Assembly: GCA_037447605.1 (NCBI GenBank)
Contig: CM074817.1
Coordinates: 2,108,001 to 2,172,000 of the forward strand
Origin: Zygnema circumcarinatum SAG 698-1b
Taxonomy: Eukaryota; Plantae; Zygnematophyceae
DNA length: 64,000 nt
Reading direction: 5' to 3'
A program made the position numbers and the translations under genes. Under the pieces are notes generated by a model. The model did not search any database, was not told the origin of the DNA, and saw only the letters and a program-made list of their open reading frames with translations. Below, piece after piece: positions 8,541 through 64,000 of this stretch (position 1 is its first letter; the number at the start of each line of letters is the position of its first letter).

Positions 8541-8599
8541 AGCCAATCAGATCCTGCCACATCTGCATACTGCATGACATGGCACTATATGATTGGTTT
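8541..8599. promoter_or_regulatory. Inverted pair of CCAAT-N9-CCAC-like composite motifs in the CYN/MTHFR divergent promoter
   Basis: AGCCAATCAGATCCTGCCACAT...ATGACATGGCACTATATGATTGGTTT; each half is one mismatch from CCAAT-N9-CCACG. Function is inferred. Confidence 0.45.
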
Positions 8600-8790
8600 A
8601 TCTAGATCCTACTCCTGCCCTGTGTGGTTCCGCCTGGCCTCCGCGCACCTTCCGCGTTCCTTCTGCTCCTGCCTGCCATAGGCCCTGCCTATCTGCTTCC
8701 TGCCACGCTCCCTCACTCTCCCTACCGCTCTCTCTCTCTCTCCCTCCCTCCCTCCCTCCCTCCCTCCCTGCAGGAGGCCCTCAGGCCGCC

Positions 8791-14341
<5,551 letters not shown>

Positions 14342-24010: not shown

Positions 24011-25620
24011 TGCTAGAGACTGCTGCCTCCGCAATATTCTTTGCCAGTTTGAACCGTCGTCCTTCTTTGTAGAGCGACCAGAAAGGCGCACAAAAACCTT
24101 CCACATAGACAGAAATATAATTCTTTCGCATGCAAGAAGGTCCGCTTTGCAGATTAGGGTTATTGCTTGTACTCTGACGGCCACCTTCGTTGTGGAACTG
24201 TTACTGCGTTACCGGTGCATCGAACTGCTTGGCAATCATCTGCGTTTCCCGAACCTGAAACTCGACTGCATTTTTTCGTACATGTGATAAAACGCGACAT
24301 GCAAGGGTACAGCGAACGGCTCCACGATTTGGAGCCTCCCTACAAATCCTGCAGGCTAGAACGCGCCGTCGTGAAGGCATGGCCTCGCAGCACGCCAAAG
24401 GCGCAGCATTCCGCACCGTGTTCCGTGCAGCCGGGCGCAGGGAAGGCTCTCTCCAGGGCTTCATCCATGGCGGACGCGAGGGCCAGCTGGCGTCCTGCAT
24501 CCTAGGGAGGGGAGGTCAAACCAGCCACGTGGTCTTGATGCCACGTGGCGAAATGCAACTGGAATACATAAATGAAACATTGCTGCTACGTGGCGAGTTT
24601 CGATTCGCGGAGGTTAAAAAGGACGTCCTTGCAGGCTCCAGACTCGCTGACGTGGCGGGCCGTCGGGTGGAATATACTCCTAGCGGTCGGCACGTGCAAA
24701 CGTGTTCTGCGATTGGCGGAGGCGCAACAGCCGGCGGTTTCTGGGGCGGTACGGTACTGTCTGCCGTACGAAGGATATCTCGATACCTTCCCTGCGGGAG
24801 ATTCCGACCAGATTCTCCACATCTGATGGATGAAAACGTACGGAATTTTGGAAAACGACAGGCCGCTACCTTGAAGGGAGTCCGTGTACGAAATCCCCTA
24901 AATTCATCTACAGTACAGTGTAGTATAGATTCGTGGCCGTTCCTTGGGGAAAAAAAATTGAAGGAAAAATATGGATTATCAGACATAACAGAATTGTCAA
25001 ACAAAGTGACGATCACAGTTCTGTGAAAGTTACAGTTACTTTTGCATAAGCGACCGCTGTTACAGTTACAGTTATGGTTACAGTTACGGCTACATTATTG
25101 ACGGTGTAGCAGCTTGGCGAGGCTGCTTCGAGGGAGGGCTTGAAGCGTTATTGTTGGGCCTAGGCGTAGCTTTCAGCTCCAAGCCTTTTGCTTTTGTGCT
25201 TAGGTCTTTTGCGACGAGCTCTTCATGGTCCTACAAGAGCATCATCGCCATCGTGAGGTCAATGCCACACCCCACTCCTCCTTCAGCGTGTGATGGCCCT
25301 TCGTGAGGTCCATTGAAGTTAGAGTGGGGGGTAGAGTGGGAAGGTAGGTGGCAAGTGTTATTGTAGGGTAGTTAGATTTGTGATACGCTAAATTACTTGG
25401 TATTTAACTTATTGGGGTTTGCTTTTAGCTGAATAGAATAGTCATATAAGTATTGTGTCACAAAATATTGGTATGGTAGAATTATAGTGTTCAAGCTTGT
25501 AATGGGGTGCTTCAGTTCATTGTGAGTTGTTGAAGCTGGTGTTTGCAGTCCTTGGATGAGCATGTCCAAAGTATATCTAAGTTGTACGGCTCTCATTAAT
25601 ACAAAAGAAGCTTTCCTAAA

Positions 25621-26631
25621 GGAAAATTCTTTTCTCACACCTTTTTTGTCTACACACAGGCCTCTTTTCGACGGGCAGATTTTAAAATAGCACAAAAAAA
25701 GAACACACCTTTCACACCTTCTCACCTTTTTTTTTTTCACCATTTTTTTCCCACCTTTTTGAAATCGATACACACCTTTCTCCATCGGGCAGATTTTACC
25801 CCTTCTTGTTTTTTTCAAAGAAAAAAATATCGGCCTGCCCGAATCCACTCGGAGCAGAAGATCCGTCCGCCACGAGATCGTTCGCGGGTGGCCGTCCTTC
25901 ACACGTGCAGAAACTATACACCGTCGATTCTAGAGCAGATCACACCACGGCAGATCACCTTTCGATGGGCTCGGTTCCAGCGAATGGCACACGCCCACGT
26001 GTCCCACCCGAGCAGGCTCGAGGTCCGTACACATATCGTACGGTCGCAGCTTCGAGGAAAGTCTAAATTCCTTACATTGCGAGCTTGAACCAATCACCAT
26101 CTGCCGCGTGCTCTTTTTAAACGTGGCAAACTGTGATTGGTACAGGCACTCAACTTTAATTATTACGTTTTTTGACTTTCCTCGAAGCTGCGGGCGTACG
26201 CCTTTTGTACGGTCCTTGGAGCCGGATTGGGTGGGACACGTGGGACAGAGCTCGGCTGCTGATCGAACGGTGATCTGCCATGGTGCGATCTGCGTGAATA
26301 TCGACGGCGGAAAATTATTGCACGTGTGAAGGACGGCCACCCGCGAACGATCTCGTGGCGGACGGATCTTCCGCTCCGAGCGGATTCGGGCAGGCAGATA
26401 TTTTTTTCTCTGAAAATAAATGATAAGGAGTAAAATCTGCCCGACAGAAAAAGGTCTCACGGCGCTCGGCCGCTCAGGACTAGTAGCGTGTGTCGATTCC
26501 AAAAACATGTGAAAAAAAAGGTGAAAAAAAAAAAGGTGTGAAAGGTGTTTTCCTTTTTTGTCTATTTTAAAATCTGCCCAGCGAAAAGAGGTCTGTGTGT
26601 AGACAAAAAAGGTGTGAGAATAGAATTTTCC
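25621..26631. mobile_element. 1011-bp non-autonomous foldback/MULE-like element (family A); almost entirely palindromic
   Basis: Termini GGAAAATTCT...AGAATTTTCC; 8-bp TSD TTCCTAAA at 25613-25620 and 26632-26639; arms complementary to near the centre (~26115); no ORF. Confidence 0.9.
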
Positions 26632-27126: not shown

Positions 27127-30100
27127 ATGGCGGCCGCTAGCTGTCCCCCCGCGACGCTCGCGCCGGGGGGGCTCCACCATGAGCGTGGCGCCTCCCCCTC
27201 CCTTCTATCCTCCCTGCGCTCCTCGCCTCTCCCGCACCTCCTTTCTGAGAAGCTCCCTCTGCAGCAAAGAGGCCACCGCCAGTCGCCATGGACATGTGCT
27301 TCCCGCCCCGGAGCTTCTGGGGAGAGCGCGCGGGAATCCATAGCTACTATTCCGGGTAAGAAGGGGGGCCAGAAGGAGAAGCTCGAGAGCAATGGCAGGC
27401 AGCCACGTGGCAGCAAGGGGGTGAAGGAGGGCCGGCAGGGGAAGGCAGGAAAGACATGGGCGAAGTCATGGGTGCCATGGTGGGGATGGGATGGTACGGT
27501 CGAGGAAGACACGAGCAGCTTGGAGGGGTGGCTCAGAGCAGAGGGCCTTCCTCCTCAGAAAGTGACTTTGAACCCTGTCATGGAGGGAGAGAGGGGTTTA
27601 CTCGCCAAGCAAGACATTGGAAAAGGGGAAATGCTACTGTATGTGCCGGAGAAGCTGCTTATCACTGCTGAAACGGTGAGCAGATAGTTGTGAGGGGCTG
27701 CTAATTGAGTAGAGCTGTTTTTGTAGTGATGGTCTACACTTTCTCTTTTCCACGAATTTTGAAAGGTAAGCTAAGGTCTATAGTCCGTTCCGCCTAAATA
27801 TGCGATCCCATATTCAAGCCTAACCTTAATTTCTGCTTCGCAGGTATACAGATGTCCCAGAGTGGGTGCCTTCCTGAAGAAGACGAATGTCCCGGACTGG
27901 CCGGCCCTTGCTGTGTACATTCTGAGTGAGGCTGCACTGGGCAATCAGTCAGAATGGAGTCCTTACATAGAGGCTCTTCCGCAGAATCCAGGCTGCATTC
28001 TCATGTGGTAAGCTGCATGCGTTCAAGCAGCAATGTCTGAAAGTTTGAATGTCGCTTTCTGTTGTGGGTTTGTAGGACTTGAAAGCATCCTGGCACCAGA
28101 AACACACAGAATTTTCCCGGCTTAATTCAGTTCTATCGCAAACATGTCCGTAGCTGTGTGCTAAGGTCGTAATACTTCAGGTCCTATTTCTTCATTTCTT
28201 GTTTTTTGAGAGAAATCAGGTCATTGGAGGAAGTCGACACTCTCTTGGAGGGTTCACCGTTGCGACAAAAGGCCATTGAAGTTATTGCGGAGGTCACTGA
28301 AACGTAGGGCTGCTTTCCTCCCTTCCCTCTGTGTTTCTCGTTTTCTCTCTCTCGTACTCCCTTTCCCACCCCGTCCCTCCCCCCTTGCCATCTCGTTACG
28401 GCGTTTTCTCTCCCCATCTCTCCCCATCTCTCCCCTGCTTCTATGCTGGATATATGAATTGGAGGGCTTGATTTTCCTGCCTCCATTCTGAGGTGCTGTA
28501 GATAGACTTCAGTCACTTTAAAGGCACCATTTCAGACTTGACATGGCCAATTTGTGTTGCCGGTGCTTTTTTCTCTGTGCAGCTTTAGAGATTTGGACAC
28601 GGTTCTGTTTTCAAAGCATCCAGACGTCTTCCCTCCACAGGTATCAAAATTTCTACCGATGTAATCCCCTTTGAAGCCACTGTTCATACATTTCTGCTAA
28701 TTCGGAAGCAGGGGATCGGCAAGTAAAAAAATCGCCCACTGCATGTTCCGATAACCCCACTCACACCCTCTCCTACTTTTCTCCTCTCCAACGGAAATCA
28801 TTGAATTGACCTCTTCAGGTGTTCACATTGGGAGCATTCAAGTGGGCATTCAGCATTCTCTTCTCTCGTATGGTGAGGGAAAGAAACCCTGTTCACATTC
28901 GTTGCTCCTCTTCAATAATGTGGCTAAAAGTATTTGACGAAGTTTCGCTTCGAAAACTGGTCCGCGTTAATATTGCCTGAAAACTGAAACTGAACTGTCT
29001 TGTTGCATGGAACAGGTCCGCCTACAGTCTCTAGGGGGGACTTTGGCCCTCGTTCCATGGGCTGACATGATAAATCATAAATCTGACGTGAGTTCCAAAA
29101 CCCATGCACTATGAACAGCTGTTTTGCCCAACTTGCCCTCTGAAAACTCAACTACACCTTCACATGGAAACTTAGGAGACGAAACATGGGGTTTAGATTG
29201 CCAGAATTGAACGGTTGTGGCTATTCTTTCTATCTCATGCTTATTCAAAGTGAGAAAAAGCAGCTAATGCTGGGCAGCTGAGTGCAGGTTGGAGCTTATC
29301 TTGACTTTGATCCAAGCAGCCGAACAGTGGTTTTGAAGACCGACCGAACATATGGCAAAGGGCAGCAGGTGGACCACTTCTCTCTTTCTCCTCACTTTCT
29401 TCTCTCTCGTCTCCCTCCTCTCCCACCCCAGAACCTTCTTTTGTACAGTTAGATTTAGTGTTGGTGTGGAGGTATCTTTCTGAACCTCTCGTTCTACTCC
29501 AGTGATGCAATTTTTTTTCTAATTTATTTCGATTATGTTTCGCCACAAATCGTGGTGCCGACAGGTGTACGTTTCCTATGGGCCCCGACCCAATGGCGAA
29601 TTGCTGCTGGCCTATGGCATGGTGCCATCTGGCAGAAATCCACACAACTCGGTGGAAATTTCCCTTGGTCTGAACTCTGCAGACCCTCTCCTGGAAACAA
29701 AGCAGCGAGCTCTTGCGACATCTGGGGTCACATCGTATCCTGAAAATCAGAAAGACAAAAAATCTGCCCTTTTTCAGTGAAAGTCTATGTTGTTGCGAAT
29801 CGTATGCTCATAACACACTCAAATATTTTATCTCTTAATGGTTGAAAGAACAAGTCCTGGAAAGGTACGGGCATAGAGATTCACTCGCTGCATGCAGCCA
29901 TTCCTTAACCCCAATATCGACGCAGACCTTCCAGCTTCCCTCTTAAAATGGAGGGACTTCCGGCGCAGCTTGAAGCATATGCTCGTCTCGTTGCAGCCGG
30001 ACCCACCTCCTCCTCAGAGAGCCTTCAGGAGGTGAGCATCGAAATGCAAAATTCTCAAAAACTCTTTCATTCCAAGTTCTTGCAATTACAATGTACCATT

Positions 30101-35870: not shown

Positions 35871-38068
35871 TCCCCCTTGCCAGCACTCCCCTCCCCTCCC
35901 CTCCCAGCGGCCGTACCGCCCGCCCGGCGGCTATGGCGGCCGCCCCCTCCTGCCCGCCCGCCCGCCTGCCCGCCTGGCGGCCTCCCAAAGCGCCACATGG
36001 CGGCGGCTCCTCCCTTTGGGGCCGCGCCGCCGTACGGACGACCATCGCTCGCGACAAAAAGCGCCACGGACAACCGCGCAACCGAACCGGAACTGTACGA
36101 GACAGGAAAAATCGGTGACCGACAGCCTTCAAAAAGTCGGAAGCTGTACGAAACGTGTACAAACAAGAGTTCGTACGGTACGGTTAACACTTTAGGCGGT
36201 GGCACCACTCGAGTGCCTCTGGGCTGCCCCTTCGTACGGCTGCAGCTGTACCGTATCTACACGATACGATACGGCCTGGTCCGTACGGTACCCAGGCGGC
36301 GAACATTCGCGTAGTCGCGTGGGGACCTCCACGGAGGCGGCGGAGGGACTCGGGGACCGGCTGGGGTCCCTGCGGGGACGGCATGATTGCCGCGGGGACG
36401 GCCTTCAATGCGGGCGGGGCTGAAAGTCAATTACGGCCGGGAAGAAGGGGGACAAACGGCCGCACGCTCTAATGGGAATCTATGTCACTGTTTCACGCTA
36501 GGTTTACAGGACGCTGATCCATGTGCAGAGGGACAGAGGGCCGCTGTCCCTCTGTCCCATTCAGAGGGACAGCGGCCGCAAGTCCGATTGGATGCACGCG
36601 TGGGGGTTAGCTGGAGGACACCTGGCAGTCCGTATGGGGGCTCTGGCACGCTCTCATCCGTCGGATCGACAGGGCGGGCCACCAGATCGTTGGCCCGCAG
36701 GGCCCAATGGGACCAGCCTGGACCGCGTCCACGAATAGGAACGAGACACGTCACCAAGTTGCGGCTCTCTGCAGCTCACGACCGTTTTGCGGTTGTGCGT
36801 GACGCGTCAAACGGGAACTGTCAATTTGAAAATGACTTTTTTTTTGTGTTTTTGAGAACTGAATTGGAGGGAGGGCATTGCAATCGACGATTCGTTCTTC
36901 AAAATTAGTACCTGCACTGCCACCTTGTAATCGGTCTCATATACTAGTTTCGAAATTGATTTTTTTCCAAAACTTTTCAGACGAGCGTCTGACCCAGACG
37001 CCTGCCAGTTGTTTCCCCTGACTTCTCACGTCACCGCCGGATCCGTACCCGCGCCAGTACCTGTACGGTTAATTTTGGACGCAGCGATCCTGTACACCAT
37101 ACCGGATCGGACGGAGAGCGTTTGTGCCATGTGCCATCTTGGATTTTTGTCATGCGCCAAAAGTTTTCGAATACACGTGGTCGCTTGTGGTTGCGAGCAG
37201 AGCGATCGGGTGGGTGACGTGGCAGCGCAGGGGCATGTACGCGTGGCTGAAGAATGATTGGCCGCCCGGGTGACCGTACGGATTGCACTGTTTTCGAAAC
37301 GTCCCTATCTGTACAGAATTTTCGTACGACAGGGAACCTTCGGATAAATACCACCAGAATGATTGAGACTCCTCAAAATTTCTATTTTAATAGCGCATTG
37401 TTCAACCTCATTGGACTTTCAGCGCTACCGTAGAGGCTCGCGAAATTGCGAGTATGCATAGCAATTTGAACAACATGAAAATAAAAAGGGTAGTGATATT
37501 TCCACCCCTTTTTTGGATCCAAACACCCCTTCCCGGCCGGGCAGATTTCAAAAGGGATTAAAAACGGAAAATGCGTTTTTCACACCTTTTTGGAACCGAT
37601 ATCCACCTTCTTCCGTCGGCTGATTTTATTTTTTCTAACCAAGGAAAATGATACCCCGTCACTGCATTTTGAATACTGTATCCCGCCTCCCTGAATTTTT
37701 TTTTTGGGGGAACGAAAATATCTGCCTGCCCGAATCCGCTCGAAGCGGAAGATCCGTCCGCCACGAGATCGCTCGTGGGTGTCCGTCCTTCACACGTGCG
37801 TGTCAATCGCATCTGTCGATTCCCTCGCAGATCCAACCACTGCAGGTCACCGTTCGATCTCCAGCCGGGCTCGATCTTAGCGAATGGAAAGCGCCCACGA
37901 GTCCCGTCAAAGCCGGATCGCACGTACGAGTGCGCGCGTCCCTCGGCCCGAGATCTCGTCATTGTTAGTTCCCAGCCAATAAAAATCTGCCACGTATTTC
38001 ATTTTTGACGTGGAAACTTTTGATTGGTCCAAGCTCTCATTGTACGAAATTCTGGGTTCCTTAAGTTG

Positions 38069-40073
38069 GGAAAATGATACAGCGGCCCCACTCTTTGGAT
38101 ATCGGCGCCCCTTTTGGGAAAAATTGTACTTTTTTTTTTGGCTAATCACCCCCCCCCTTGGATCTTTCGGGAGGAGAGATCTTGTAGACAATCGGACCCC
38201 GCGCCTCGCGCGCAGGATCCGACTGTGCACCGACGTACGGCGCCGCGCATCGCGGCGCGGCCCGCGAGATGCGGCGAGCCTACGGAAACGTTGTCCTCAC
38301 CTGACCCGTTTGGGTCGAGGTTGCCACGTGGCAGTCTGCCATTGGACAGCCCTGCTGCCGGTCCCCCATGCCGATACAGTGGACCCCCATAATATTTTCG
38401 CCATGGTTTCGGCAAATACTTGGCGAAAATATTGTAATTTGCAAATATAAGGTCCGTGTTACCAATAGGCGAGCGGTATTATGTTAGAGTTCATGTCTGT
38501 TTGTACGTATCGTATCGTGTCGTATCGTACCGTACCGTACCGTGATTTAGATACACGAGCTCCTATTGGTGTCGTACGTATACCGTACGAATTAGAGATT
38601 TTATTCGTACTTACCGTACAGCGTAAAAGCGTGACCCATGTTTGAAAGCCGTTTCGATTAACAGATTTTGTATTGGAGAATAGGTCAGGTTAGGTTAACA
38701 CCCCTAATACGTTAACATTGAGTTACCGTACAAAAAGGTGGTTTCGGCAAAATCGGGGCGAATTTCTTGGGGACGCACTGTACAAGGTGGAAAATATTAT
38801 GGGGGTCCACTGTATCGGCATGGGGGACCGGCAGCAGGGCTGTCCAATGGCAGACTGCCACGTGGCAACCTCGACCCAAACGGGTCAGGTGAGGACAACG
38901 TTTCCGTAGGCTCGCCGCATCTCGCGGGCCGCGCCGCGATGCGCGGCGCCGTACGTCGGTGCACAGTCGGATCCTGCGCGCGAGGCGCGGGGTCCGATTG
39001 TCTACAAGATCTCTCCTCCCGAAAGATCCAAGGGGGGGGTGATTAGCCAAAAAAAAGGGTAGTGATATTTCCACCCCTTTTTTGGATCCAAACACCCCTT
39101 CCCGGCCGGGCAGATGTCAAAAAGGATTAAAAACGGAAAATGGCTTTTTCACACCTTTTTGGAATCGATACCACCCTCCATCGGCAGATTTATTTCTGCG
39201 AAACAAGGAAAATGATAACCCATCACCCCATTTGAATATCCCGCTTACCTGAATTTTTTTTCACGCGTGCGGTCAATCGCAGCCGTCGATTCCCTCGCAG
39301 ATCGCAACACGGCAGATCACTATTTGATCGGCAGCCGGGCTCGGTCACAGCGCGGGGCACCTGCCCACGTATCCCGCCAAAGTCCTCTCAAAAGTTTGTC
39401 CGTACAAATGGCGTACAATCGCAATGTGAGGAACCCAAAATTTTGTACATTGAGATCTTGAACCAATCATAATTTTCCACGTCAAAAATGAAACACGTGG
39501 CAGATGTTGATTGGCTGGGAGCTAACAATGACGAGATCTCGGGCCGAGGGACGCGCGCACTCGCACGTGCGATCCGGCTTTGACGGGACTCGTGGGCGCT
39601 TTCCATTCGCTAAGATCGAGCCCGGCTGCAGATCGAACGGTGATTTGCAGTGGTGCGATCTGCGAGGGAATCGACAGCTGCGATTGACACACACGTGTGA
39701 AGGACGGACACCCGCGAACGATCTCGTGGCGGACGGATCTTCCGCTCCGAGCGGATTCGGGCAGGCAGATAATTCTTTCCCTCAAAAAAAAAATTCAGGG
39801 AGGCGGGATACAGTCTTCAAAATGCGGTGACGTGGTATCATTTTCCTTGGTTAGCAAAAATAAAATCAGCCGACGGAAGAAGGTAGGTATCGATTCCAAA
39901 AAGGTGTGAAAAAAGCATTTTCTGTTTTTAATCCCTTCTGAAATCTGCCCGGCCGGGAAGGGGTGTTTGGATCCAAAAAAGGGGTGGAAATATCACTACC
40001 CAAAAAAAAAAGTACAATTTTTCCCAAAAGGGGGCGCCGATATCCAAAGAGTGGGGCCGCTGTATCATTTTCC
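38069..40073. mobile_element. Family B long-TIR (~330 bp) element, middle layer of the nest
   Basis: Termini GGAAAATGATAC...GTATCATTTTCC; 8-bp TSD TTAAGTTG at 38061-38068 and 40074-40081. Left TIR 38069-38400 matches 38790-39056 plus ~40010-40073. Confidence 0.9.
39057..40001. mobile_element. Family A long-TIR element (945 bp), innermost layer, inverted relative to the outer copy
   Basis: Same GGGTAGTGATATTTCCACCCC termini; inserted in the poly-A of family B's right TIR with an A8 duplication. Confidence 0.88.
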
Positions 40074-41413
40074 TTAAGTTGCGACCGCACGACATTTGTA
40101 CGGACAAACTTTTGAGACGACTTTGGCGGGATACGTGGGCACGTGCCATTCGCTGTGACCGAGCCCGGCTGCAGATCAAATAGTGATCTGCCGTGTTACG
40201 ATCTGCGAGGGAATCGACGGCTGCGATTGACCGCACGCGTGAAAAAAAATTCAGGTAGGCGGGATATTCAAAATGGGGTGACGGGTTATCAGTTTCCTTG
40301 TTTCGCAAAAATAAAATCTGCCGATGCAGGGTGGGTATCGATTCCAAAAAGGTGTGAAAAAAGCATTTTCCGTTTTTAATCCTTTTTGAAATCTGCCCGG
40401 CCGGGAAGGGGTGTTTGGATCCAAAAAAGGGGTGGAAATATCACTACCCAATAAAAATTGAAATGACCAAGTTGCACGTTCTCGAAAATCCCTCTGCCGC
40501 CCTTTCCTGTACGGCCGACCGGCCGCATCCGCGAACGTTCAACGCCGCAATCATTTCGGGAGCCGTCCGTGGGCGGCCGCAAACGCGACCCGTTCCTCTG
40601 AACCTTGCGGCGCAAGGTCAACGTTGCCAGGTGGCGCTTATGCATGTCGTATGCGGCGGTACAGTCTGCCCTGGCGCTGCGTCCAGGACGGACCGTACTC
40701 CTGCGGACGAGGAGAATTAAGGACCTGGGCCCGCTACTGAGCGCTACGCGACAATGGAGTTAATGGGGGCGCGACAAGAAAGGATTCCCCGACAACTGGC
40801 AGGAGGTCGGTCTGGACAGGTCGGGCCATCCGAAAGGTTTCAGAAAAAATCGATTTCAGAACTGCGGTCCTTTGCGGTTATTTGGTCCTTTGCGACCAGT
40901 TCCTCGTGGTTCCCCATGAGGCTGACTTTGTCCATGTACATCTGATGGCATCATGGCCAGGCGTGAGATCCATGCCGCAACTTCTCCCTATTCACATGTA
41001 TCGTTAGAAAAAATCCGTTTCCGTACTTTAGCCCCCACCACGCGCATGGACACGCCCACAAAGCATCCATCCATGCGGCCGCACATCCGTGCACGTCGTA
41101 CCACGTGGCATCACGTGTACTCAGATGATTGGTCCGCCTGTCACCTTTACACGTGTCGTACTCCCGGTGCCGTACGTTCCGCGCCTTGCGGGACGGCCCG
41201 TTTCACACGTGCCGGCGCTCTCTTGCCAGGAGGGAGGGAGGGAGGAGGGAGCCAGAAGGGAGGCAGGAGGGAGGGAGGGAGGGAGGAGGGAGCCAGAAGG
41301 GAGGCAGGAGGGAGGGAGGGAGGGAGGGAGGGAGGGAGGGAGGGAGGGAGGGAGGGAGGGAGGGAGGACGAGGCAGGGAGGACGACAGCTGTAGAGGGGG
41401 GAGTGTCGCCGCC

Positions 41414-46650
<5,237 letters not shown>

Positions 46651-50437: not shown

Positions 50438-51015
50438 AGGGTTCCATAGGGTTTAGGTTCCAGCAGGGAAGTTGCCTATGCGGAGCTTTGCAGCACAATA
50501 GGCGCCCTGTAGGAAGCTCTGCAAGGTGCGCCTATTTGTTGGATGGTGAGAGAAGACGACGCGCGTGTAATTAGCACTGAGTTGAGCCGGGCCAAATGCA
50601 GCTTCAGCTCTCTCGCAATTCGCTTCACCTTCATCAGGTGAAGCTTTCTGCACTCTGCAGGTTTTACCTTTCTGGGGCGGTGTCCCCTCAGAGAGGGTGA
50701 GGATTACAGCCGGAGGAGGGCTAAGTTTAGGGCGGAGAGGCGTACGGGCTAGGGTTTGGATGTACCATTTTGTAATTGTTTTTGTTTTTATTTTTATTTT
50801 TAAGTAGCAATGAAGTCTCCTTTCGGGCACTGTTAACCGACTCTCAATGGTTGGAACCAGGACCTGAAATGCGCAGATTTTAAACGGGGACTGCTCTGGC
50901 ACGTGCGAGTCACGTCTCAACATTTTGCAGAAGGATGTGCTTTGACCATTACGTCGTTACTAGCCGTTAGTCATTATGTGGAAAACCTACTTAAACGAAC
51001 AATGGAGACCCCCTA

Positions 51016-51235
51016 ACCAATGAATGTATTGGCAAAGGTTGCCAACCATTGTATCCAATGCTTGCAACCACTTGAGTGCCAAACAGTTGCTAGCAACCAT
51101 TGGCGATGGTTGTTGACCATTGAGTCGATTAATTCCAACCATATACAATGGTTGGCTGAGTTGCCAACCAATGGTTCAACCATTGGCAATGGCAATGGCA
51201 TTGGTTGGTACCAATGGGTTTGCAACCATTCTTCC
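51016..51235. repeat. Cluster of CAACCATTGG/CCAATGGTTG motifs in both orientations
   Basis: Direct reading; the same motif family occurs at 54121-54430. Confidence 0.75.
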
Positions 51236-51413
51236 AACTGGATATTTACAATTCCATGCGTGAGCTGTATTTCTAGCTCCAAGAAATCGGCCTAACGGAT
51301 TTTGACGATACAGTAATTCATTTCTTTTTTGTGGAAGCTTAGAGTGTGTGGATTAGATTTGTGAACCTACAGAAGTTATTAGATACAAAATTTTTACTTC
51401 TACGTTTCCAAGC

Positions 51414-51534
51414 GTGGTGCGATCATACCTAGGCTACTACGCCGGATCCCATCAGAACTCCGCAGCTATGCGCCTGTGGGCCGAAATAGTACTGGGATGG
51501 GTGACCTCCCGGGAAATCCCGGTGTCGCACCCAC
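51414..51534 (+). rRNA. 5S rRNA: 5S rRNA gene (solitary, full length)
   Basis: GTGGTGCGATCATACC...GGATCCCATCAGAACTCCGCAG...TAGTACTGGGATGGGTGACCTCCCGGGAAATCCCGGTGTCGCACCC. Helices I-III pair, the C box is intact, there is a pyrimidine at -1, and T4/T5 runs follow. Confidence 0.9.
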
Positions 51535-51670
51535 CACTCTTTTGGTTTTTACGTTTTTCTTGAAAATGATATTCCATCCCCATCCCCCTGTTTTGGATAT
51601 CAGGAAATTACAGTAGAATGTAACGTTTGTCAAAAGTTTTAGATTTGTTTTGAGAGACAAATTAATGTTA

Positions 51671-52058
51671 GGGCCTGCCCGAATCCGCTCAGAGCGGACG
51701 ATCCGTCCGGCTCGCTCGTGCGAGTGCGCGCGTCTCTCGGCCCGAGATCTCCGCAAAGCTATGGAACTGGACAGGAGAGCCTGCGGCGGCTCGCCTTTGA
51801 CAACTGGAAGCCAATCATCATCAGCCACGTGGAATTATGTATGACATGGCACATTGTGACTGGTTTAGGCTGTACGGTGTGAAAGCCTTTCCTCGAAGCT
51901 GGGACCGTACGACCTTTTTACGGACCCGATTCGGTCGCCTATATCCGTACGGATACGTCCAGGCGCCGCCGCGTGCCGTCCGCGAACTATTTACCGTTTG
52001 ACGTCTTCCAATGGGGACAAGCCACGTAAGCAGAAATGGTTTAATTTACGTCTGGCCC
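51671..52058. mobile_element. 388-bp family-A-core derivative with short GGGCC termini (PIF/Harbinger-like MITE)
   Basis: Starts GGGCCTGCCCGAATCCGCTC (family A internal motif) and ends CGTCTGGCCC; flanks TTA/TGA (imperfect TSD). Confidence 0.55.
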
Positions 52059-52099
52059 TGATGGGGTCCGGCGTAGTAGCCTAGGTATGATCGCACCAC
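52058..52099 (-). pseudogene. 5S rRNA: Truncated 5S rRNA copy (first ~42 nt)
   Basis: Reverse complement GTGGTGCGATCATACCTAGGCTACTACGCCGGACCCCATCAG has one mismatch to the full copy; upstream flank also homologous. Confidence 0.85.
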
Positions 52100-52820
52100 A
52101 CTTGTTGTAACCATTAATTTAAATATAATAAAATTTTAGGTTCACAAATTTAACCACACACTGAAAGCCTCCACAAAAAAAAAAATTAGCGTCAAAAACC
52201 GTTACGCCGATGTTTTGGAGCTAGAAATACAGCTCACGCATGGAACTGTGCACATCCAGTTGCACACAACAGGACTACCCACCATATAGCTACAGTCGAA
52301 CGTTACATGTAACGGTACCCTTGGCGTTTCCGCAGAATGCGCTTCTTGCCGAACAGCAAAACGACAAAACTCCTCATAATTACAACGAGACCGTACGATT
52401 TGATTTCTCCCAACATGGGCGGTAGCAGATTCTGCTGGCTTCCCACCTCCTAACTTTGTCGTCTAGAGCCGTGGCCGACCCTTGGCCAATCAGCGCCCTC
52501 TTCCGCCCATGTGCTGCCGGCCGCGTTCCACTACCGACATAAAATCTTCATTGCGCACGTGCAAACTCAAGATTCGATTTTCTTGCCCTTCCCGCGAATC
52601 TTGGAAAGATTTTATCCTTGTCTTATTCACTGTCTGCGCCAGCGTTCGTACGTTTACGAAGCTTCCAGGTGGGTGCGGTCGCGGCGGGCGGCGGGCGGCC
52701 GCCACCAAAAATGGGCTCCTATGCATGGCGGTGGAGCTGAGGGCTGGCTCAAATTGGAGGGTTTTGGAGGGCGATTTTAGGGTTTGGGAGTGTGAAGTTT
52801 AGGGTTTTGGAGGGCGGAAA

Positions 52821-53510
52821 ATGGTGCTGAGGTTTTGGAGAGTGGCGGTTTCGGAGGGTTCAGAGGCAATGTACATCTTCAGACGGGCGGGCGAGCAGGG
52901 AGGGGCCGTCCATGGCGGCTCGCAGTTCGACCGCTTCTCCTCCCTCGGCCGCCCGCAGCTCCGCCACCCCTTCGTGTACCGCGGAGGGGCGGAGGCCTCA
53001 CTGGCGGACGGGGGAAGCTCTGGCCATGACGGAGCAGACCAAGGGGGAGCGGAGAGCCCTGAGTACGGGTGGGAGAAGAGAGTGGAGGACGGGGAGCGTA
53101 AAGCGCATAGCGCCATGGCGGGCGGAGACCCTCCACAGCACGTGGAGGCCATGGCTGCCGGTCCGGCCCGCAGAGGGAGGGCACGCCTGCGTGTGAGGGC
53201 CGGCCCGCTGAACTCGCTGAGGGAGGAGGTGGAGGCGAGCGTGGGAGAGGCGGAGGGGCAGGAGGAGGTCATGCAGTGGTGCTCCTCGTGGAGCTCCATG
53301 GCGGCCTTGTGCATCCTCTTCCTGCTCATAGTGGGCCTGCCGCCTCTCCTGCCTGTGCTCCCCCTGCCGCCCTACGAGCTCATGTTCTTTCCCGGCCTCC
53401 TCCTGCTGCTGCTGCTCGCCTTCGCGGCCATGCCTGACGCGGCCTCGCCATCGCCGCCGTCTCCTTGGCCTGTTGCTCCTTCTTCAAGAGGGCAAAAGTG
53501 GGCTCATTGA
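52821..53510 (+). CDS. Single-exon ARGOS/OSR-domain-like small membrane protein
   Basis: IVGLPPLLPVLPLPPYELMFFPGLLLLLLLAFAAMP aligns without gaps to the ARGOS OSR core LILPLVLPPLPPPPFMLLLVPIGIMVLLVVLAFMP; GC-rich coding-like ORF. Confidence 0.75.
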   Translation: MVLRFWRVAVSEGSEAMYIFRRAGEQGGAVHGGSQFDRFSSLGRPQLRHPFVYRGGAEASLADGGSSGHDGADQGGAESPEYGWEKRVEDGERKAHSAMAGGDPPQHVEAMAAGPARRGRARLRVRAGPLNSLREEVEASVGEAEGQEEVMQWCSSWSSMAALCILFLLIVGLPPLLPVLPLPPYELMFFPGLLLLLLLAFAAMPDAASPSPPSPWPVAPSSRGQKWAH

Positions 53511-54173
53511 CAGCGCACTTACAGCGCCAACAGCGCCAAGCTTTCAATATGGCTAGTTTGACTTCTGTCTAGGTGTAGTCATGAGCAAGAGCGAGCGAGT
53601 AAAGGGATGTGGTGGTCGCGGAGGCACATGTCTGAAGGCTCTTCCCCTGAAGGGGGAGATAGGTGATTGTTTATTTTCACATTCATGTTCATAGATGATA
53701 GTTTGCAGAAGCAGAATGGCTCTGACGCCCTTAGGTAACTTGAGCAGTAGGAGCTCCTTCCACGTTGTCAGAGGCAGAGGTAGTGTTCAGCAGAACGGAG
53801 TAGCATGCAGACCAGACGCTCACAAGTGAAAAGTAGGAAGCAGTAGAGCAGGGATATTTGGAAACTTGGTCTCGGTAGATTTTGTATAGTTCTTCGAATT
53901 AGATTTTAGTGTCAATACTTCAGAGACGCAGATCGGTTAGTCAGCTGCTAACCAGTTGTACTCATGTGCCACTGAAAGCTTGCTTCTCGGCCTTGAGTTT
54001 GCTTGCTTCGCCTGCAGGTTTTGATCTTTGTTTGCGGCAGGAACTGTTTCCGGATGCCTTTGAAGACTCTGAAACTTACACCTTCGTCAGTTAGTACTAA
54101 GAAGGCTGCAGGACCATGGGATCGGCAACCATTGGACAAATACTGGATACCAATGGTTGGCCGTCTAATGTTT

Positions 54174-54320
54174 GGCAACCATTGGAATGGCTGGCAACCG
54201 TTGGAATGGCTGGCAACCGTTGGTATGGCTGGCAACCGTTGGAATGGCTGGCAACCGTTGGAATGGCGGGCAACCGTTGGAATGGCTGGCAACCGTTGGA
54301 ATGGCTGGCAACCATTGGCA
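54174..54320. repeat. 19-bp tandem repeat GGCAACCGTTGGAATGGCT, 7 copies plus a partial, within a wider CAACCATTGG cluster (54121-54430)
   Basis: Units start at 54174, 54193, 54212, 54231, 54250, 54269, 54288 and 54307. Confidence 0.92.
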
Positions 54321-55038
54321 TCTAATGGTTGTCAAACCTTTGCAATGGTTGGGTTGTTTCAGTCACATGCAAATGGTTTGCAACCCATGTTGAATCCAAT
54401 GGTTGGCAACCACTGCAATGGTTGGAACTAATACATAGAAAGTGCAAAATTGTATTCACCAACTGCCGAATGCGAACTCATGTCTAGTAATGTATGGAAA
54501 CGACCCACTTTCAACCATTACAGAGCGTGTTGACGTGAATTTTTGCTATTAACACCCGCTTTACTGACAAAACTCTTTACCACGACCTCATTGCTTGTCA
54601 TTTTTTCGTCCTTTGATCCTTTGTGACCCGTTCCTCGTGATTCCCCCTGCTGATTTTGTCCACGTACATTTGATGGCATCATCGCCATCGTCAGATCAAT
54701 GCCACATCTTTTCCTTTAACCAATGGTTGGCACCCATTCCAATCATTGATCCAATGGTGCGACCTGTGATGTACACCAAGGACAAAAATCTCGTAATACA
54801 TTACCAACAATCAGGAGGAGTTTCCATGAATTAATTGCCTTCCATGATCACTCTTCTTCCTCACCCATTTCTGCCTTCGACATTGACAAGGCCTCTCTGA
54901 TCTCCTTCTCCTCTTACAAACCGCTCTGAGCAGTCCGAGCAACAACCCATCTACCTCCCTTTCCCTTTACTTTTTCCTTTTCCTTTTCTATTTTTTGAAT
55001 TTATTCCTCGCCGTTGCCTGAGCCAGCACAGTCCGAAT

Positions 55039-58354: not shown

Positions 58355-61300
58355 CTATTCCGCCAAAAACCCAGTCAGAGCTTCCAAGTACTCGTCCACA
58401 TGCGCGAGGCAGGGCCAATAATCAGTCCTCATCCGAGCGGTGGTTGACCAGTCAGAAATCTCCAACCGCATAAGGAGATGAAATTTCGGAGGCAGAAAGA
58501 TTAGCAAATGAATGGTTCCCAGAATCGCGCTATCCCCACGCCTGTCCAGCAGAACTCCGGTCTCTGACCGACCTCGTGGTTTCCAACCACTCCCTTCAAA
58601 CTCTCTCTCTCTTCTCCCTCTCTCTCTCTCTCTCCCCTCTGTCTTGGAGACGCTCTCTCTCGCTTCAAGCCTGAGCAGCTTCAGATCTGATTCTCCCGCA
58701 CTTTTTCCGCTGCTGCTGTTGCTGCTGCTGCTGCCCTCTTCACCATTTCTTGCCTGCCTTTTTCGAAGGGATCCTTTTCGAGAATCTGCTGAAGATTCTT
58801 TCCAGGCAACATCCTTGAGAATCCCCCCCTTCCTAATGATGTGAACAAGGGGCCCACCTTCAACTGCTACCACAAAAGCTGCCAGTCTCTCCTCTACTGC
58901 CTCTACCACTCTCTCTGCCGCTACGTCCACAAGCTTCACAGACTCTGCGCAGCCTCCAAGTACAAGCTCCACATGCTGCAACACTGTGCCGTTACCCTCC
59001 CTCCTTTCCGTTGTCAAAACTGCAGCTTTCAACTCCTCTGAGAAAGAGGACTCCCCTGAAGTGGAGCATATTTCCCAGAGAGCGTTAAAGAGCTTCTCTC
59101 TGCTCTTCACTTCACTCACCTTCTCAGAGACTAAACCTACAGTGGGTGCCTGCAAAAAGAGGTCTTCTATGCCTACTGGAATACTGTCCAATGCCCCTTC
59201 AACTGTGCTCCCTTCCTCATCTGTAAACTCAACAGTAGCCATTAACAGAGCAGGTGCTGGTTGCTTAGGCTCCAACTCTATCACAACCAAATGTGGTGGT
59301 TTGAAGGCCCCTCCAAAGCCCTTTTCCTCTTCTCTCCTATCTGCTTCCCTCTCCCTTTGCCCTCCATTCCCCGTCTCCTGCCTTTCACCACTCACAACCG
59401 ACTCTTTGGCATCCCTACTCGGCCTTTCATTACCTCCAGTCGATACCTCCTTCACTCCACGACTCTCCCCTTGGTCGGATTCTCTCCCCTGATGGTCTCT
59501 TACATCTCCATCCACAAGCAGCTTATTCTGCCCAGACTCCCTCACCTTCCTCCCTCCCCCTCCCTCGTCAAACTGCTCCCTTCTCCCACGCTTCCGAGGG
59601 AGACCGTCCTCCACAAACCCCCCATCCCAGTGAGTCATTTCTGTCTCTCCTTTCATGCTTTGAAACCCTTCATTCCTGAATGCAATTTTCCCCTCTGCTC
59701 CATTCCTTCCGTCCTCTCTCTCTGTTTCCTGCTCCTCAACAGACTCTCTCCTTTGTTCTATGAGACCTGCCACTAGTGGCGCTCTCCCTCCCTTCCTCAC
59801 CTCTCCTCTCCCCTGCATGTCCTGCATGGCTTCTTCTACCGACTCTCTCACAAGGAACGGAACATGGACAGGCCCAACAGGAGCATATAAATTGCTGTTC
59901 TGGAAACGTACAACTGCTGCATAGATCACTGGCCCATCTACCCATGCCCCTCCATTCTCATCATTCCCCTCTCCACTCAGCCTCCTCTCCCTCTGCTCCT
60001 CTCCTTTCGCCTGGTTAGGCTCTCTCTTCGGCATATCTTTGGCCCTACCCGCACCCTCCTTCTCCCTCTCCCTCTTCTCGTCTCCCTCTCCCCCTTTCTC
60101 TCCAAAATCACCCGTACTCGTTTTTCCAGACTCGTCTCCTCCTGAATCAGATTCTTGCCGCCTCCTCTTAGCCTCCCCTGCTCTCACGTCGACATACCGC
60201 AGTGCACACTGCAATTTTATCTTCCTCTTCTCCTTTCCCTCCCCTTGAAGAAGATGAGTAAAATAACATCGTAGCAAAGCAACCATTTCTGGAGATTGGG
60301 TTCCGAGAGTAGGTTCGGCTGTTTCCCCACTGTCAATTTTCCCATCTCCCAATCCCTTCGCTCCCTGCTCTGTAACCACCCCTTTCCTCTCCTTCACCTC
60401 CTCATTCGCTGCCGTACTCAGAACTTCACCACCCTCTAATCCCACTCGTCCATTGCCTCTCTCTTCCGATTCCCCACCCATCTCACCCTTCGAATGCCCT
60501 TCAGTTCTGCTGCTACTACCATCTACTACACCACTCTCACTCCCACTCCCCCTCCCGCTGCTGTGCTCATTACTACCATACACTGTTGTGACATCTCCCA
60601 CCTCTCTCCCCCACAGACTCTCCTCCACAGCCGGCACTACCACCAGCTCCCACGAATGCTGAACCAACAGAGGAGTGACCCGTCTTAGCCACACACTCGC
60701 TCTCACATCCTCTCCCGCAGCTCCGCGACTCTTGGGAGGTTTAATGGACACATCTCCCAAAGAAGTTAAACGCGGAATTCCACTCGTTTCTATACTTGGC
60801 TCTGCTTTCTCGCCATCATATTGTAAGAGCTTACGAAGTTGCCATCCCGGGCAGCTGCTCAGCAAGCGGATGTAACGGCTGCATACATATATGAGAGGAA
60901 CATAACATTCCTTTAAGAGACGAGATGAGAAAAAAAGAGCGCATAGTATGGAGTTGACCAAAAGACTGGCCAAAGAAAACTGAGATTACCTCCTCCTCCT
61001 TCTCAGGAACATAAATAAGGGATAATAAGGGATAATAAGGGATTAGAAACTAACCGAGATGTGTCCCGCACCTCCAATTCGGGATATGCTTTCGCCATAT
61101 AGCCCAAAAGGGATTGCAATTGGTCGAACACTCGGGAAGTGGAGTGCTGCAAAAGGGCCGTCCTGTACAAAGCAAGCAACAAGCAAACAAGCTTCATTTC
61201 TCTCACTCTGCTGCACCTGAAAATTCGTCAATAGCAGATGAAGAATTTAACCCATGTGTGGCATGAAGAAAGCACACAGAACAACGAAAAAAACTTCTTT

Positions 61301-64000
61301 TGCTGAATGTTTATGAGCCCCCCCACCTGCATATTCCCAAAACTTGCTGACCACGCAACCACAGCCGAGAAGTTCTGCTCCTCCCTCCTCCTCTCCTTCC
61401 CCTCCACCTGATATAGTCCTCAAGTAACTGCAGTGCTGCCCTAGGAGGAATGGCGGAGTTTTTCACCAACTGCTCAAGCAGCCTAAAGTAGAGTGGTAGC
61501 TCCTTTGAGGGGCGGAGAGAGGGAAGGAGACGTTCTTGCAGTGCTTGCAGTAGCTCCTCTCCCACTGCGGAATGTTGCCGGCAATGTAGTAAACGCACAA
61601 GGAAGCTAAGCAGGTTACTAAGCAGCTTTGCGTGCTCTTTCGCAATCAGTGTGAGAGTCTCCTTCACCAGCTCGAACACTCCCGACCTCTCTGTTTGTAG
61701 AGGTGGGGGGGGGAATTTCGAAGGGTGCTGATTGGGTGGATGAGATTCTTCGGACTTTTCTGCTTCCAAAGAGTGGAAATTCTGTACGTTTGCTCGTGCA
61801 GATGCCATTAGAAAGTGGTGGAGTGTCCAGAAAGTGAGAGCTGCCTCCATACTGTGGGAGGGCTGATGCTTGAAGCCATTAGCACATACAAGGCTATCGG
61901 TCAGCAGCTGTCCAGCCCATTCAACAGCCACATCATGCCAGCCCTCACTCTCTCTCTCTCTCTCTCTCTCCGTCTCCTCTCTCACTGTGTTGGTGGCTCC
62001 CACTCTGATTGATGGTGCTTCCGAAACGATTTGAGCGAGAGCAGCAATTTTGGCAGCTTTGAGAGAGAGGGGATCAAAAAGGTCGGGATAGAGGAGGGGA
62101 GCGAGAGGAAAAAGAGGTGACCCCCTTCGGCTTGTGGGAGTGTCAGCCAATCGGGTGTCAGCGTCAGTGGAAATAAGCCAGTGGACTGCCAGGTGGCGGA
62201 AGATGAGAGGCTGGAAGGGCTCCTGCGTGAGCATAGCCAGACGGCGGACAAGCGGCTGAAGGTCACCTCGAAAAGAGTCCGAGTTGCGGTCCAAAAGGAG
62301 GGAGTACATCCAAAGTACTGCCACGCAGACCCCACAACAAAGGCGTGAGAGAAGGTCAGAAGGAGACTCAGGCCTCTCTGTCTCTCTCTCCCTCACCCTC
62401 ATTCTCACCCTCGCTCTACTCACCCAAAACCCGCCCACCTCCCCGGCCTTCTCTCCCACCTCCTCTACCCCTCCTCCCTTCACCTCTCCGACCCCCTTTC
62501 CCGGATCCCCTACGCCCCTTCCCCATCCTACCTGTATAGGCCTTTCCGTTAACCAGTCCCCCTCCTCCCTCCTCCCTTCCCCCTCCCCCCATCCTCCCTT
62601 TCCCAACCTCCCCCCCTTCTCTCACTCCACTCTCTTTCCCCCTCCCCCTCCCCCCATCCTCCCTTTCCCCACCTTCCCCCCTTCTCTCACTCCACTCTCT
62701 TTCCCCTCCCCCTCCCCCCATCCNNNNNNNNNNCCCTCTCCCTCTCCCTCTCCCTCTCTCAGAACAAGAGCAGGCACAAGAGTAGGGCAGAGGAGGGTGC
62801 AGAGTCTCCCTACAGGCATGGCATAGCAGCGGTCTGCTGCTGTGCAGGAGCGCCTCGCAGTGCGGGTGGTGCCGCAGGTGCGCCCCCCCCAGGCCCAGCC
62901 TCCGCGAGAGGCGGGCGAGGCCGCCCAGGAGCTCCGCCGCCCCGCTCTCCGTCGCGAGCAGACTCGCTTCAAGCAGCGCGGAAATGGCCCTCCGAAACTC
63001 ACGCAACACTGCAATGGGGTTTAACTCTACACAGGTTTGACTTTATACATGTTTAACTTTATAGGGGTTTGACTTTACAGAGGTTTAACTTGATGGTTTG
63101 CTCGCATGTGTTGAGGGGAGGAAAGCGAGTTTGAGGTTGGCAAAGTGGGTATAAGCTTTGGATGCAGATCTTTGGCGAGCGAATCAACACATCCAAATGA
63201 ATTGAAACAAAGAGAAGAGAAGAGAATTGAAGAGAAGAGAAGAGAAGAGAAAGAGAAGAGAAGAGAGAAGAGACGAGAGAAGAGTAGAGAAGGGAGAGAA
63301 GAGAAGAGAAGAGAAGAGAAGACAAGTACAAGAGAAGAGAAGTAGAAGAGAAGAGAAGAGAAGTATAAGGTAGTCTAATATTTGTGAGCGGAAGGATCAT
63401 TTGAGCGTATTTGCGACTTGAGCACTCACCACTTGGAGTAACCTCTTGCTGTGGAATAGAGCTAAGACTTCCATGTGCAGCCCCTTGACTGGCCCAGAAG
63501 GTAGGAAGAGTGTACGGAGCCAAAGGCTGTGCTGTAGACAAGAGAGCTGGAAGAATTCCGGGAGAGTTTCTCCTCTGAAGAAGGGGTGAAGCCATAGTTG
63601 CCGTTGCTCGCACTGGGGGGCGAGGTTTGGCAGGGGAGGGAGAGAGGAGGGAGGTGACTTGTGGGCTGCTACCGGGAGAAGAATTTGAGGAGGGAGGGAG
63701 GGGAGGCGATGATGCTGAGGCAGCGGAGGGAGGAGATGTGAAAAACAAGTGAGTGGCAGCATTCTGCACAACAACGGTACTCTCGAGAGTGACAAAGTGA
63801 CAAAAACAGAACATGCATGCACCCTTTCAGCACTATTAACCAGAAAGGAGGTAGGTCCCTTCGAAGCTTCCATTGCACTGTACCTGCAGAGTGGTGAGCA
63901 GAAGTAGAAGGTACGCTTGCACTGCGGGAGACCGCTCGCTCTGAAGGAGGGAGAAAAAGTGACCTGCACAAGGAGCCAATATGCAGGGCCATGCCGTCTC
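58355..64000 (-). CDS. AP5B1: AP-5 complex subunit beta, 5' part beyond the window
   Basis: FRRAISALLE...PLLCHA..VLWMY, PLIFRHLAVHWL, LYPDLFDPLSLKAAK, YPELEVRD, and the C-terminal GTIHLLIFLPPKFHLL...RTDYWPCLAHVDEYLEAL typical of plant AP5B1. Confidence 0.9.
62724..62733. other. Assembly gap (10 N) in a pyrimidine-rich intron
   Basis: Ns in the sequence. Confidence 1.
63208..63362. repeat. (AAGAG)n pentanucleotide repeat in an AP5B1 intron
   Basis: Direct reading. Confidence 0.85.

Follow-up and report, generated by a model that had tools for sequence, protein, structure and literature searches.

A fixed-spacing CCAAT-N9-CCACG motif, putatively of NF-Y/bZIP type, in nonautonomous TIR transposons and host DNA of Zygnema circumcarinatum

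The window analyzed here, a stretch of 64,000 nt from Zygnema circumcarinatum SAG 698-1b (GCA_037447605.1, CM074817.1, positions 2,108,001-2,172,000 of the forward strand), contains two families of TIR transposons, family A with four copies and one fragment in the 64 kb and family B with one copy. The first family A element, A1 (37488..40449), is a nonautonomous long-TIR element of 949 nt which carries GGGTAGTGATATTTCC at both ends and is bordered by the TSD AATAAAAA (37480-37487 and 40450-40457). It is split by the family B element (38069..40073; TSD TTAAGTTG at 38061-38068 and 40074-40081; termini GGAAAATGATAC), which has a TIR of about 330 nt and a loop of 390 nt; the A-run of its right TIR has in turn received A2 (39057..40001, 945 nt; TSD AAAAAAAA at 39049-39056 and 40002-40009). 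A1 and A2 are near-duplicates, 94% identical in opposite orientation, and A1 becomes colinear with A2 once B and one TSD copy are subtracted. A diverged symmetric subfamily is represented by A3 (25621..26631, 1011 nt; TSD TTCCTAAA, termini GGAAAATTCT). Finally, A4 (51562..51930, + strand), directly downstream of a 5S rRNA gene (51415-51533), is a fragment of family A: it is truncated, lacks the right arm, and has undergone an internal deletion.

Perfect 8-bp TSDs surround A1, B, A2, and A3, the first three forming a three-level nest. The terminal 25 nt are the same at both ends of A1, A2, and B, and 24 of 25 agree in A3, the long arms of the elements being 88-99.6% identical. These four are proven to be real mobile TIR elements, in agreement with the preliminary description of this DNA, which had considered the carriers of the motif discussed below to be mobile. 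Only short ORFs are found in the elements, one of which (134 aa, across a family A arm) had no protein relatives on search. The 8-bp TSDs of all four complete elements, their TIRs, the short subterminal repeats, and the lack of coding capacity are features shared with nonautonomous elements of hAT type. The hAT terminal consensus is YARNG, however, whereas the termini here are GGGTAGTG and GGAAAAT, and in their length, hundreds of bases, the TIRs are closer to those of MULEs; this comparison at superfamily level is based on termini and TSDs, the window holding no autonomous copy. The terminal heptamer GGAAAAT is common to A3 and B. Common ancestry of the B TIR with family A was considered and rejected, for there is no significant alignment between them.

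The motif CCAAT-N9-CCACG occurs exactly ten times in the window, against 0.07 expected from dinucleotide shuffles, in which the largest value was 1. The nine matches listed previously all lie at their reported coordinates and strands, and a tenth, 16044(+), had been missed; the latter is probably a chance match, with neither T after nor G before its CCACG and in a context that is neither promoter-like nor TE-like. The spacing is strict: scanning exact CCAAT-Nx-CCACG in the window for x from 0 to 30 returns ten sites at x=9 and 0-1 at each other value, while with up to one mismatch the count is 27 at x=9, as against 1-6 elsewhere between x=3 and x=19 and 11 at x=20. The sites of this x=20 subpeak are scattered, four of them within masked TE intervals. 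Nine distinct spacers are found among the ten exact sites, in eight of which CCAAT is followed by C/G and then A/G. A T directly follows CCACG in nine of the ten (giving CCACGT), whereas the complete palindrome CACGTG is present in only four, which favors a bZIP protein of ACGT-core type over an E-box bHLH. The extended consensus thus fits the preferences of NF-Y and bZIP factors. Not all sites are independent, because A1 and A2 are 94% identical and the two sites of B are copies within its TIRs; counting about four to five independent origins, the number is still far above chance.

Most of the exact sites lie in the transposons: 8 of the 10, and 13 of the 27 with up to one mismatch, fall within 6.9% of the window, a share that refers to this one window. 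In family A the motif forms a convergent pair at the element's center in A1, A2, A3, and A4, as had been described for the family. The A1 dyad (37976..38027, 52 nt) reads CCAAT-N9-CCACGT, 14 nt, ACGTGG-N9-ATTGG with both halves exact, and that of A2 (39463..39514, 52 nt) also has two exact halves. A3 has a dyad of 51 nt (26090..26140), at most 11 nt from the element midpoint, in which the right half is exact and the left half contains CCGCG; in A4 (51811..51863, 53 nt) an exact left half is paired with a right half that has decayed to CCAGT-N9-CCATG. The sequence CCACGTCA (= TGACGTGG), which we take to be the UPRE/P-UPRE core, is found in three half-sites of family A. The dyad and the element ends are separated by about 450-500 nt, too great a distance for the dyad to be a proximal promoter element of neighboring genes, except where transcripts initiate within the element itself. 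The variant CGAAT-N9-CCACG, which had also been noted, is present in the left arm of A1 (37881..37899, +) and again at 39591(-), 40134(-), and 25981(+), some 95-109 nt further out than the central half-site, whose orientation it shares; it is conserved, yet noncanonical as an NF-Y pentamer, and with CGAAT as its pentamer its competence for NF-Y appears doubtful. In family B each TIR holds one site, and apart from the motif there is no similarity to A, again as described: the left-TIR site CCAATGGCAGACTGCCACGTGGCA (38327..38345, - strand) includes a full palindromic G-box and has its CCAAT box towards the element interior, and the right-TIR site (38844..38862, + strand) is its mirror copy.

The motif is not confined to transposons. 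With up to one mismatch, the N9 peak stays outside the TEs, at 14 sites compared with a mean of 2.67 (Poisson 9e-7). The preliminary description had placed all its exact matches inside TIR elements, which is correct for the eight in A1, B, A2, A3, and A4 but is not borne out for 52008. This site, CCAATGGGGACAAGCCACGT (52008..52026, + strand), lies beyond the detectable end of A4 between the latter and a truncated mirror copy of the 5S gene, with no recognizable TE sequence; its attribution to family A or B was rejected, as homology to A stops around 51930; the site is in a 5S-associated inverted repeat. Another free-standing site, GCAATGGCAGGCAGCCACGTGGCA (27389..27411, + strand), matches the family B site in 21 of 23 nt within flanks devoid of homology. 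A P4-ATPase gene on the minus strand has, upstream of its 5' exons, a group of clustered ACGTGGC G-boxes (24520-24720), within which lie two tandem sites with one mismatch each (24544..24607, - strand). A convergent dyad with the geometry of family A is found in a divergent host promoter (8543..8596, 54 nt, one mismatch per half), between a cyanase-like ORF on the minus strand and MTHFR on the plus strand, whose ATG follows about 195 nt downstream of the dyad. The cyanase identity of the minus-strand ORF (7701-8093) had no Pfam confirmation on the piece tested, and for a 229-aa ORF at 52821-53510 there was no exact protein on record. When the flanks of the dyad at 8543-8596 were aligned locally with A1, A3, and A4, the scores were no better than those of shuffled sequences and so give no sign of a decayed insertion here, although an old one would be compatible with them. 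In metagenome scans, neither a conserved block of the family A arms nor a generic exact dyad had a match.

How have these boxes fared in the course of transposon divergence? The comparison rests on five family A copies, including the near-duplicates A1 and A2, and one family B copy. Between diverged subfamilies of family A the pentamers are 85-95% identical, whereas spacers reach 55-78% and flanks 28-52%, bearing in mind that the alignments were anchored on the motif and flank identity may be underestimated. For A1 and A3, 19 of 20 pentamer positions agree against 66 of 152 in the rest of the central region (Fisher 6e-6), and the corresponding contrasts give 18 of 20 for A1/A4 (7e-5) and 17 of 20 for A3/A4 (4e-4). 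The two halves of each palindromic center likewise preserve their pentamers and not their spacers. The excess identity of pentamers over spacers, which had been proposed as a test of the motif, and over flanks holds in the few copies available and indicates that the boxes have been selectively kept.

In evolutionary terms, we consider it probable that the motif is a composite promoter module of the host, of NF-Y plus bZIP type, and that nonautonomous TIR transposons carry it. CCAAT-N8-GCCACGT would then be a cis-regulatory composite of the host, by its sequence suited to NF-Y and an ACGT-core bZIP, and used in ordinary promoters, often as a dyad, 51-54 bp in length, of convergent sites. The two nonautonomous families carry it, A as a central dyad of promoter type with one CGAAT variant per arm, and B as one site in each long TIR. 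The lineages of family A have maintained boxes and spacing while the nearby central DNA diverged, which suggests that the module matters to the element. It could be what remains of the promoter of the autonomous parent, or else serve to recruit NF-Y and so keep the element accessible, and every insertion would place a ready-made site of NF-Y/bZIP type near genes. The factors that bind the module, its transcriptional activity, and its benefit to element or host are what we infer from these features of the DNA.

Another account, to which we assign a low but appreciable probability, is passive hitch-hiking, in which each family captured a fragment of a host promoter once and merely inherited it, without a role in the element or a regulatory effect after insertion. 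This would be consistent with most exact matches being copies of one another, as in the 94% identical A1 and A2 and the TIRs of B, and with the presence of free-standing host versions of both flavors. The conservation just described argues against mere inheritance, however, since pentamers at 85-95% stand out against spacers, inter-box DNA, and flanks at 28-78% across subfamilies that are identified by their arms, and the halves of the palindromic centers keep pentamers and lose spacers; moreover, two unrelated families carry the motif.

A further reading, which seems to us rather improbable, would have the families as the vehicle that created and dispersed a promoter architecture characteristic of this lineage, the convergent double CCAAT/ACGT dyad, free dyads of the MTHFR type being relics of insertions of family A with decayed arms, and NF-Y binding not only keeping the elements open for transposition but also steering insertions next to dyads, as might be exemplified by B lying 33 nt to the right of the A1 dyad.

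We give little credence to the proposal of the preliminary description, namely that these elements are mobile ERSE-I cassettes which recruit NF-Y together with a factor of ATF6/bZIP28 type and bring neighboring genes under an ER-stress or heat regulon, even with the three half-sites that presumably contain a UPRE/P-UPRE core on its side. The sequence and the strict N9 spacing are exactly those of the ERSE-I consensus (PMC5499772), and MITEs of Prunus have amplified a bZIP site of the unfolded protein response (PMC5950925). However, enrichment of the motif extends beyond the TEs, and the genes that adjoin its host instances in the window are of MTHFR/cyanase-like, P4-ATPase, and SMP-domain type instead of chaperones. 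There is no sign of stress specificity, and of the symmetric cassette envisaged for divergent promoters what stands is the central dyad, recurring in family A and seen once in a divergent host promoter.

Family A arms also contain subterminal GGCAGAT(T/C) repeats, mirrored and separate from the CCAAT/CCACG module, which we regard as better candidates for transposase sites. A copy of the subterminal heptamer, ATCTGCC, overlaps the left half-site of family A, and part of the spacer conservation in this half-site may be related to transposition. It is very improbable that the module itself serves transposition in cis, as a binding site of the transposase or another TE-encoded protein instead of host transcription factors: its conservation across the subfamilies, the heptamer overlap, and the GGAAAAT termini of A3 and B, which one transposase may serve, are outweighed by its central, not subterminal, position in family A, its enrichment outside TEs with free-standing copies in host promoter DNA devoid of TE remnants, the restriction of the conserved parts to exactly the CCAAT and CCACGT cores, and the presence of the different, properly mirrored GGCAGAT repeat in the arms.

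The reading of the motif as a host module of NF-Y/bZIP type can be related to three known systems. ERSE-I is defined as CCAAT-N9-CCACG; NF-Y binds it together with ATF6 in mammals, its partner in Arabidopsis being bZIP28 (PMC5499772). The motif studied here shares with ERSE-I both pentamers, in the same order and separated by the same strict 9 nt, and the T after CCACG produces the ACGT core expected for bZIP; the differences are that the Zygnema motif, known from its sequence, is abundant, often arranged as a convergent dyad, and located in transposons and beside genes other than chaperones. In mammalian promoters and in MLT1/LTR12 LTRs, NF-Y is stereo-aligned with E-box factors (USF1/2, MAX) at 10-12 bp (PMC4889920, PMC12065363, PMC3730095). 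These modules also combine CCAAT with a CACGTG-type site about one helical turn away, in promoters and TEs alike, but their carriers are mammalian LTR retroelements instead of TIR DNA transposons in a genome of the plant lineage. The equivalent spacing, CCAAT-N10-CACGTG, exists here where the hexamer is complete, and a full hexamer in only 4 of 10 exact sites, as against CCACGT in 9, fits a bZIP partner better than a bHLH one. Lastly, plant MITEs have amplified transcription factor motifs, such as bZIP60 sites in Harbinger MITEs of Prunus and G-box-type motifs in MITEs of Solanum (PMC5950925). Like the elements of Zygnema, these are small nonautonomous DNA transposons near genes, rich in bZIP/G-box motifs at a density far above the share of TE DNA; those motifs are single and short, in contrast with the bipartite, fixed-spacing composite found here as a dyad at the center of A or one site per TIR of B, in two unrelated families.

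Mobile DNA with a ready-made regulatory module of the host is thus a known kind of thing, and the present elements add one more case of TE-borne transcription factor sites; given the documented precedents (PMC5950925, PMC12065363), they do not constitute the undescribed system that had been surmised. If the module is bound and active, it would provide a natural system in which a two-factor site of strict spacing is copied around a genome. It could then serve to test whether, in a plant lineage that diverged early, bidirectional promoters are seeded by transposons, and whether the ERSE layout is a general NF-Y/bZIP grammar that preceded its stress specificity in land plants and animals.

The pattern CCAAT-N9-CCACG, in which the CCAAT and CCACG pentamers are separated by a 9-nt spacer, has ten exact matches in the window by pattern search, compared with a mean of 0.07 and a maximum of 1 in 100 dinucleotide-preserving shuffles. 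All nine sites of the preliminary description, with their fixed N9 and variable spacers, were recovered, plus a tenth at 16044(+). When all spacer lengths from 0 to 30 were scanned in both box orders, the exact pentamers matched ten times at N9 and at most once at any other setting; allowing one mismatch, there were 27 matches at N9 versus 1-6 at spacings of 3-19 and 11 at 20. Given these counts, the peak confined to N9 and the nine distinct spacers among the ten exact sites, the motif is real, and so are its coordinates, the fixed distance between its boxes and the variability of its spacers. The effective consensus is longer than the pattern first reported, namely CCAAT-N8-GCCACGT: T directly follows CCACG in nine of the ten exact sites and G precedes it in most, while C/G then A/G directly follow CCAAT in eight. 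Site 16044 is the only one lacking the ACGT core and has no special context, so we take it to be a probable chance match. Because several sites belong to recent copies (A1 and A2; the two terminal inverted repeats, TIRs, of element B), we count about four to five independent occurrences rather than ten, still far above 0.07.

Self-comparison and junction inspection of 37300-40600 resolved the carriers into a three-level nest. The outermost element, A1 (37488-40449; target-site duplication, TSD, AATAAAAA), contains B (38069-40073; TSD TTAAGTTG), and A2 (39057-40001; TSD AAAAAAAA) sits within the A-run of B's right TIR. Taking out B together with a single TSD copy leaves an A1 sequence whose 949 nt run colinear, end to end, with A2 in reverse complement, which is classical proof of insertion; the two are 94% identical. 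This self-nesting of the same two families occurs inside 3 kb, with B at the TSD 38061-38068, 33 nt to the right of the paired sites of A1. Family A also comprises A3 (25621-26631; TSD TTCCTAAA), a symmetric and diverged relative of A1/A2, and A4 (about 51562-51930), a truncated fifth element immediately 3' of a 5S rRNA gene. None of A1-A4 or B has coding capacity, and the longest ORF in the arms had no match in a protein search. The TSDs are AT-rich in all four complete elements and 8 bp long, a length compatible with hAT transposons and also found in a few other superfamilies; however, neither the termini, GGGTAGTG and GGAAAAT, nor TIRs that extend over several hundred bases look typical of hAT. 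Since A3 and B have the same terminal heptamer, GGAAAAT, a single transposase may mobilise both families. The natural candidates for transposase-binding repeats are the mirrored subterminal GGCAGAT(T/C) repeats of the family A arms (3-5 per arm at 37488-40449 and 25621-26631) and GATC, which are separate from the CCAAT/CCACG boxes. The masked transposon intervals, 6.9% of the window, hold 28 of its 71 GCAGAT hexamers, mostly in family A, and GATC reaches 12.6-13.8 per kb in A1 and A2 (4- to 5-fold enrichment) and 8.7 in A3 (about 3-fold), versus 2.7 in the window.

The family A sites are arranged as a convergent pair, or dyad, of 51-53 nt (CCAAT-N9-CCACGT, 13-15 nt, ACGTGG-N9-ATTGG), which in the symmetric A3 lies no more than 11 nt from the element midpoint; each arm bears a CGAAT-N9-CCACG variant about 95-109 nt outward, in unchanged orientation. 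Family B has one site per TIR, CCAATGGCAGACTGCCACGTGGCA, its CCAAT box pointing into the element, and its TIR shows no similarity to family A other than the motif. The suggestion that all sites reside in TIR elements was not confirmed, as 52008 falls beyond the detectable end of A4, within the inverted repeat that carries the 5S gene along with a truncated mirror copy of it. This gene (51415-51533; Rfam 91 bits) belongs to an inverted repeat at 51235-52262, about 220 nt per arm, whose right arm contains at 52058-52104 a mirror copy of roughly the first 41 nt of this gene; the two arms enclose both A4 and site 52008. Dense arrays of GCAACCATTGG (= CCAATGGTTGC) at 51000-51235 and 54110-54420, the latter with 7.7 tandem copies of a 19-nt unit (54173-54318), bracket a ~3-kb segment with the 5S gene, A4 and a 229-aa ORF (52821-53510; no record in an exact-protein look-up), and could represent either CCAAT-box arrays or the subterminal repeats of some larger element.

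A3 and A4 were assigned to family A through their arms, not the motif, and the dyads of A1, A3 and A4 were aligned pairwise with 80 nt on either side. The pentamers are more conserved than the spacers in every comparison: 19/20 versus 11/18 for A1/A3 (inter-box 8/14), 18/20 versus 10/18 for A1/A4 (inter-box 8/15) and 17/20 versus 14/18 for A3/A4 (inter-box 5/15). Flank identity, which the motif-anchored alignment may depress, is 19/60 and 28/60, 21/57 and 23/52, and 17/60 and 31/60, respectively, and Fisher tests of pentamers versus all else give p = 6e-6, 7e-5 and 4e-4, on a total of five family A copies. The A1 and A2 dyads differ at five positions, four in spacers, one inter-box and none in the pentamers. 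Two metagenome scans, with a family A arm block and a generic exact dyad, yielded no further DNA.

By sequence the module matches ERSE-I, in which CCAAT is bound by NF-Y and CCACG, nine bases away, by a bZIP of the ATF6/bZIP28 type (PMC5499772). As CCACGT is near-invariant and full CACGTG is present in only four of the ten exact sites, an ACGT-core bZIP fits better than an E-box bHLH as the putative partner; however, the spacing of the module also equals the mammalian alignment of NF-Y with USF/MAX, with CCAAT 10-12 bp from the E-box (PMC4889920). Three features argue against a simple proximal-promoter role: the family A dyad lies 450-500 nt from the element ends, one left half-site overlaps an ATCTGCC heptamer belonging to the subterminal repeats, and the conserved arm variant has CGAAT in place of a canonical NF-Y pentamer.

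Outside the transposons, 14 sites with at most one mismatch occur at N9 versus a mean of 2.67 over the other 30 spacings (Poisson 9e-7), the other 13 being inside. The window has five convergent dyads, compared with about 0.1 in shuffles, and four are in family A. The free-standing one (8543-8596) has on one side a minus-strand ORF that resembles a cyanase N-terminus and on the other the first MTHFR exon; Pfam PF02219 starts at residue 72 of ORF 8593-9090, which puts the ATG near 8791 and the dyad about 195 nt upstream. The flanks of this dyad resemble A1, A3 and A4 no more than shuffled controls do. A B-type twin at 27389 shares 21 of 23 nt with the B site and no flank homology. Two tandem one-mismatch sites fall inside an ACGTGGC-box cluster (24520-24720; five ACGTG(G) boxes in 200 nt, two with a near-CCAAT at N9) upstream of a P4-ATPase (flippase) gene, at its 5' exons (minus strand; exons about 17-23.2 kb), and a further site precedes the ATG of an SMP/PH-domain gene by about 300 nt. 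A-type and B-type modules are thus both found in the host's own regulatory DNA and not in transposons alone. That family A insertions were the source of the host dyads is unlikely, the sole hint being the unusual right half-site GTGCCATGTCAT common to the MTHFR dyad and A4.

No chaperones are among the genes identified next to the module. The window also holds an AP5B1 gene (AP-5 complex beta subunit; 58355-62606, minus strand; Pfam middle, barrel and C-terminal domains). The SMP-domain gene has a (GGA/GGGA)n tract just upstream of its first ORF and a (GA)n tract within it; the (CT)n/(GA)n and (CCCT)n/(GGGA)n microsatellites at 11480-12800 and 41200-42340 are very long, and local GC skew is strong (-0.34 at 32-36 kb, +0.25 at 40-48 kb).

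There is ample precedent for the carriage and spread of transcription-factor sites by transposons. In plants, bZIP60, ABI5/ABF and G-box motifs have been amplified by MITEs (PMC5950925); in mammals, NF-Y binds LTR12, MLT1 and MER elements, and in MLT1 the USF sites are precisely aligned with it (PMC12065363, PMC3730095). Here, in contrast, the carriers are DNA elements that have long TIRs and 8-bp TSDs, the geometry is strictly bipartite and ERSE-type, and a symmetric dyad lies at the element centre; partial literature coverage gave no description of such a transposon-borne module in a streptophyte alga. We infer that the module is a general host promoter module which transposons carry, and the conservation of its boxes across family A lineages would imply a benefit to the element. 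It could be a relic of an autonomous parent's promoter or, alternatively, NF-Y recruitment may keep the element accessible; in inserting, an element would add putative NF-Y/bZIP-type sites near genes.
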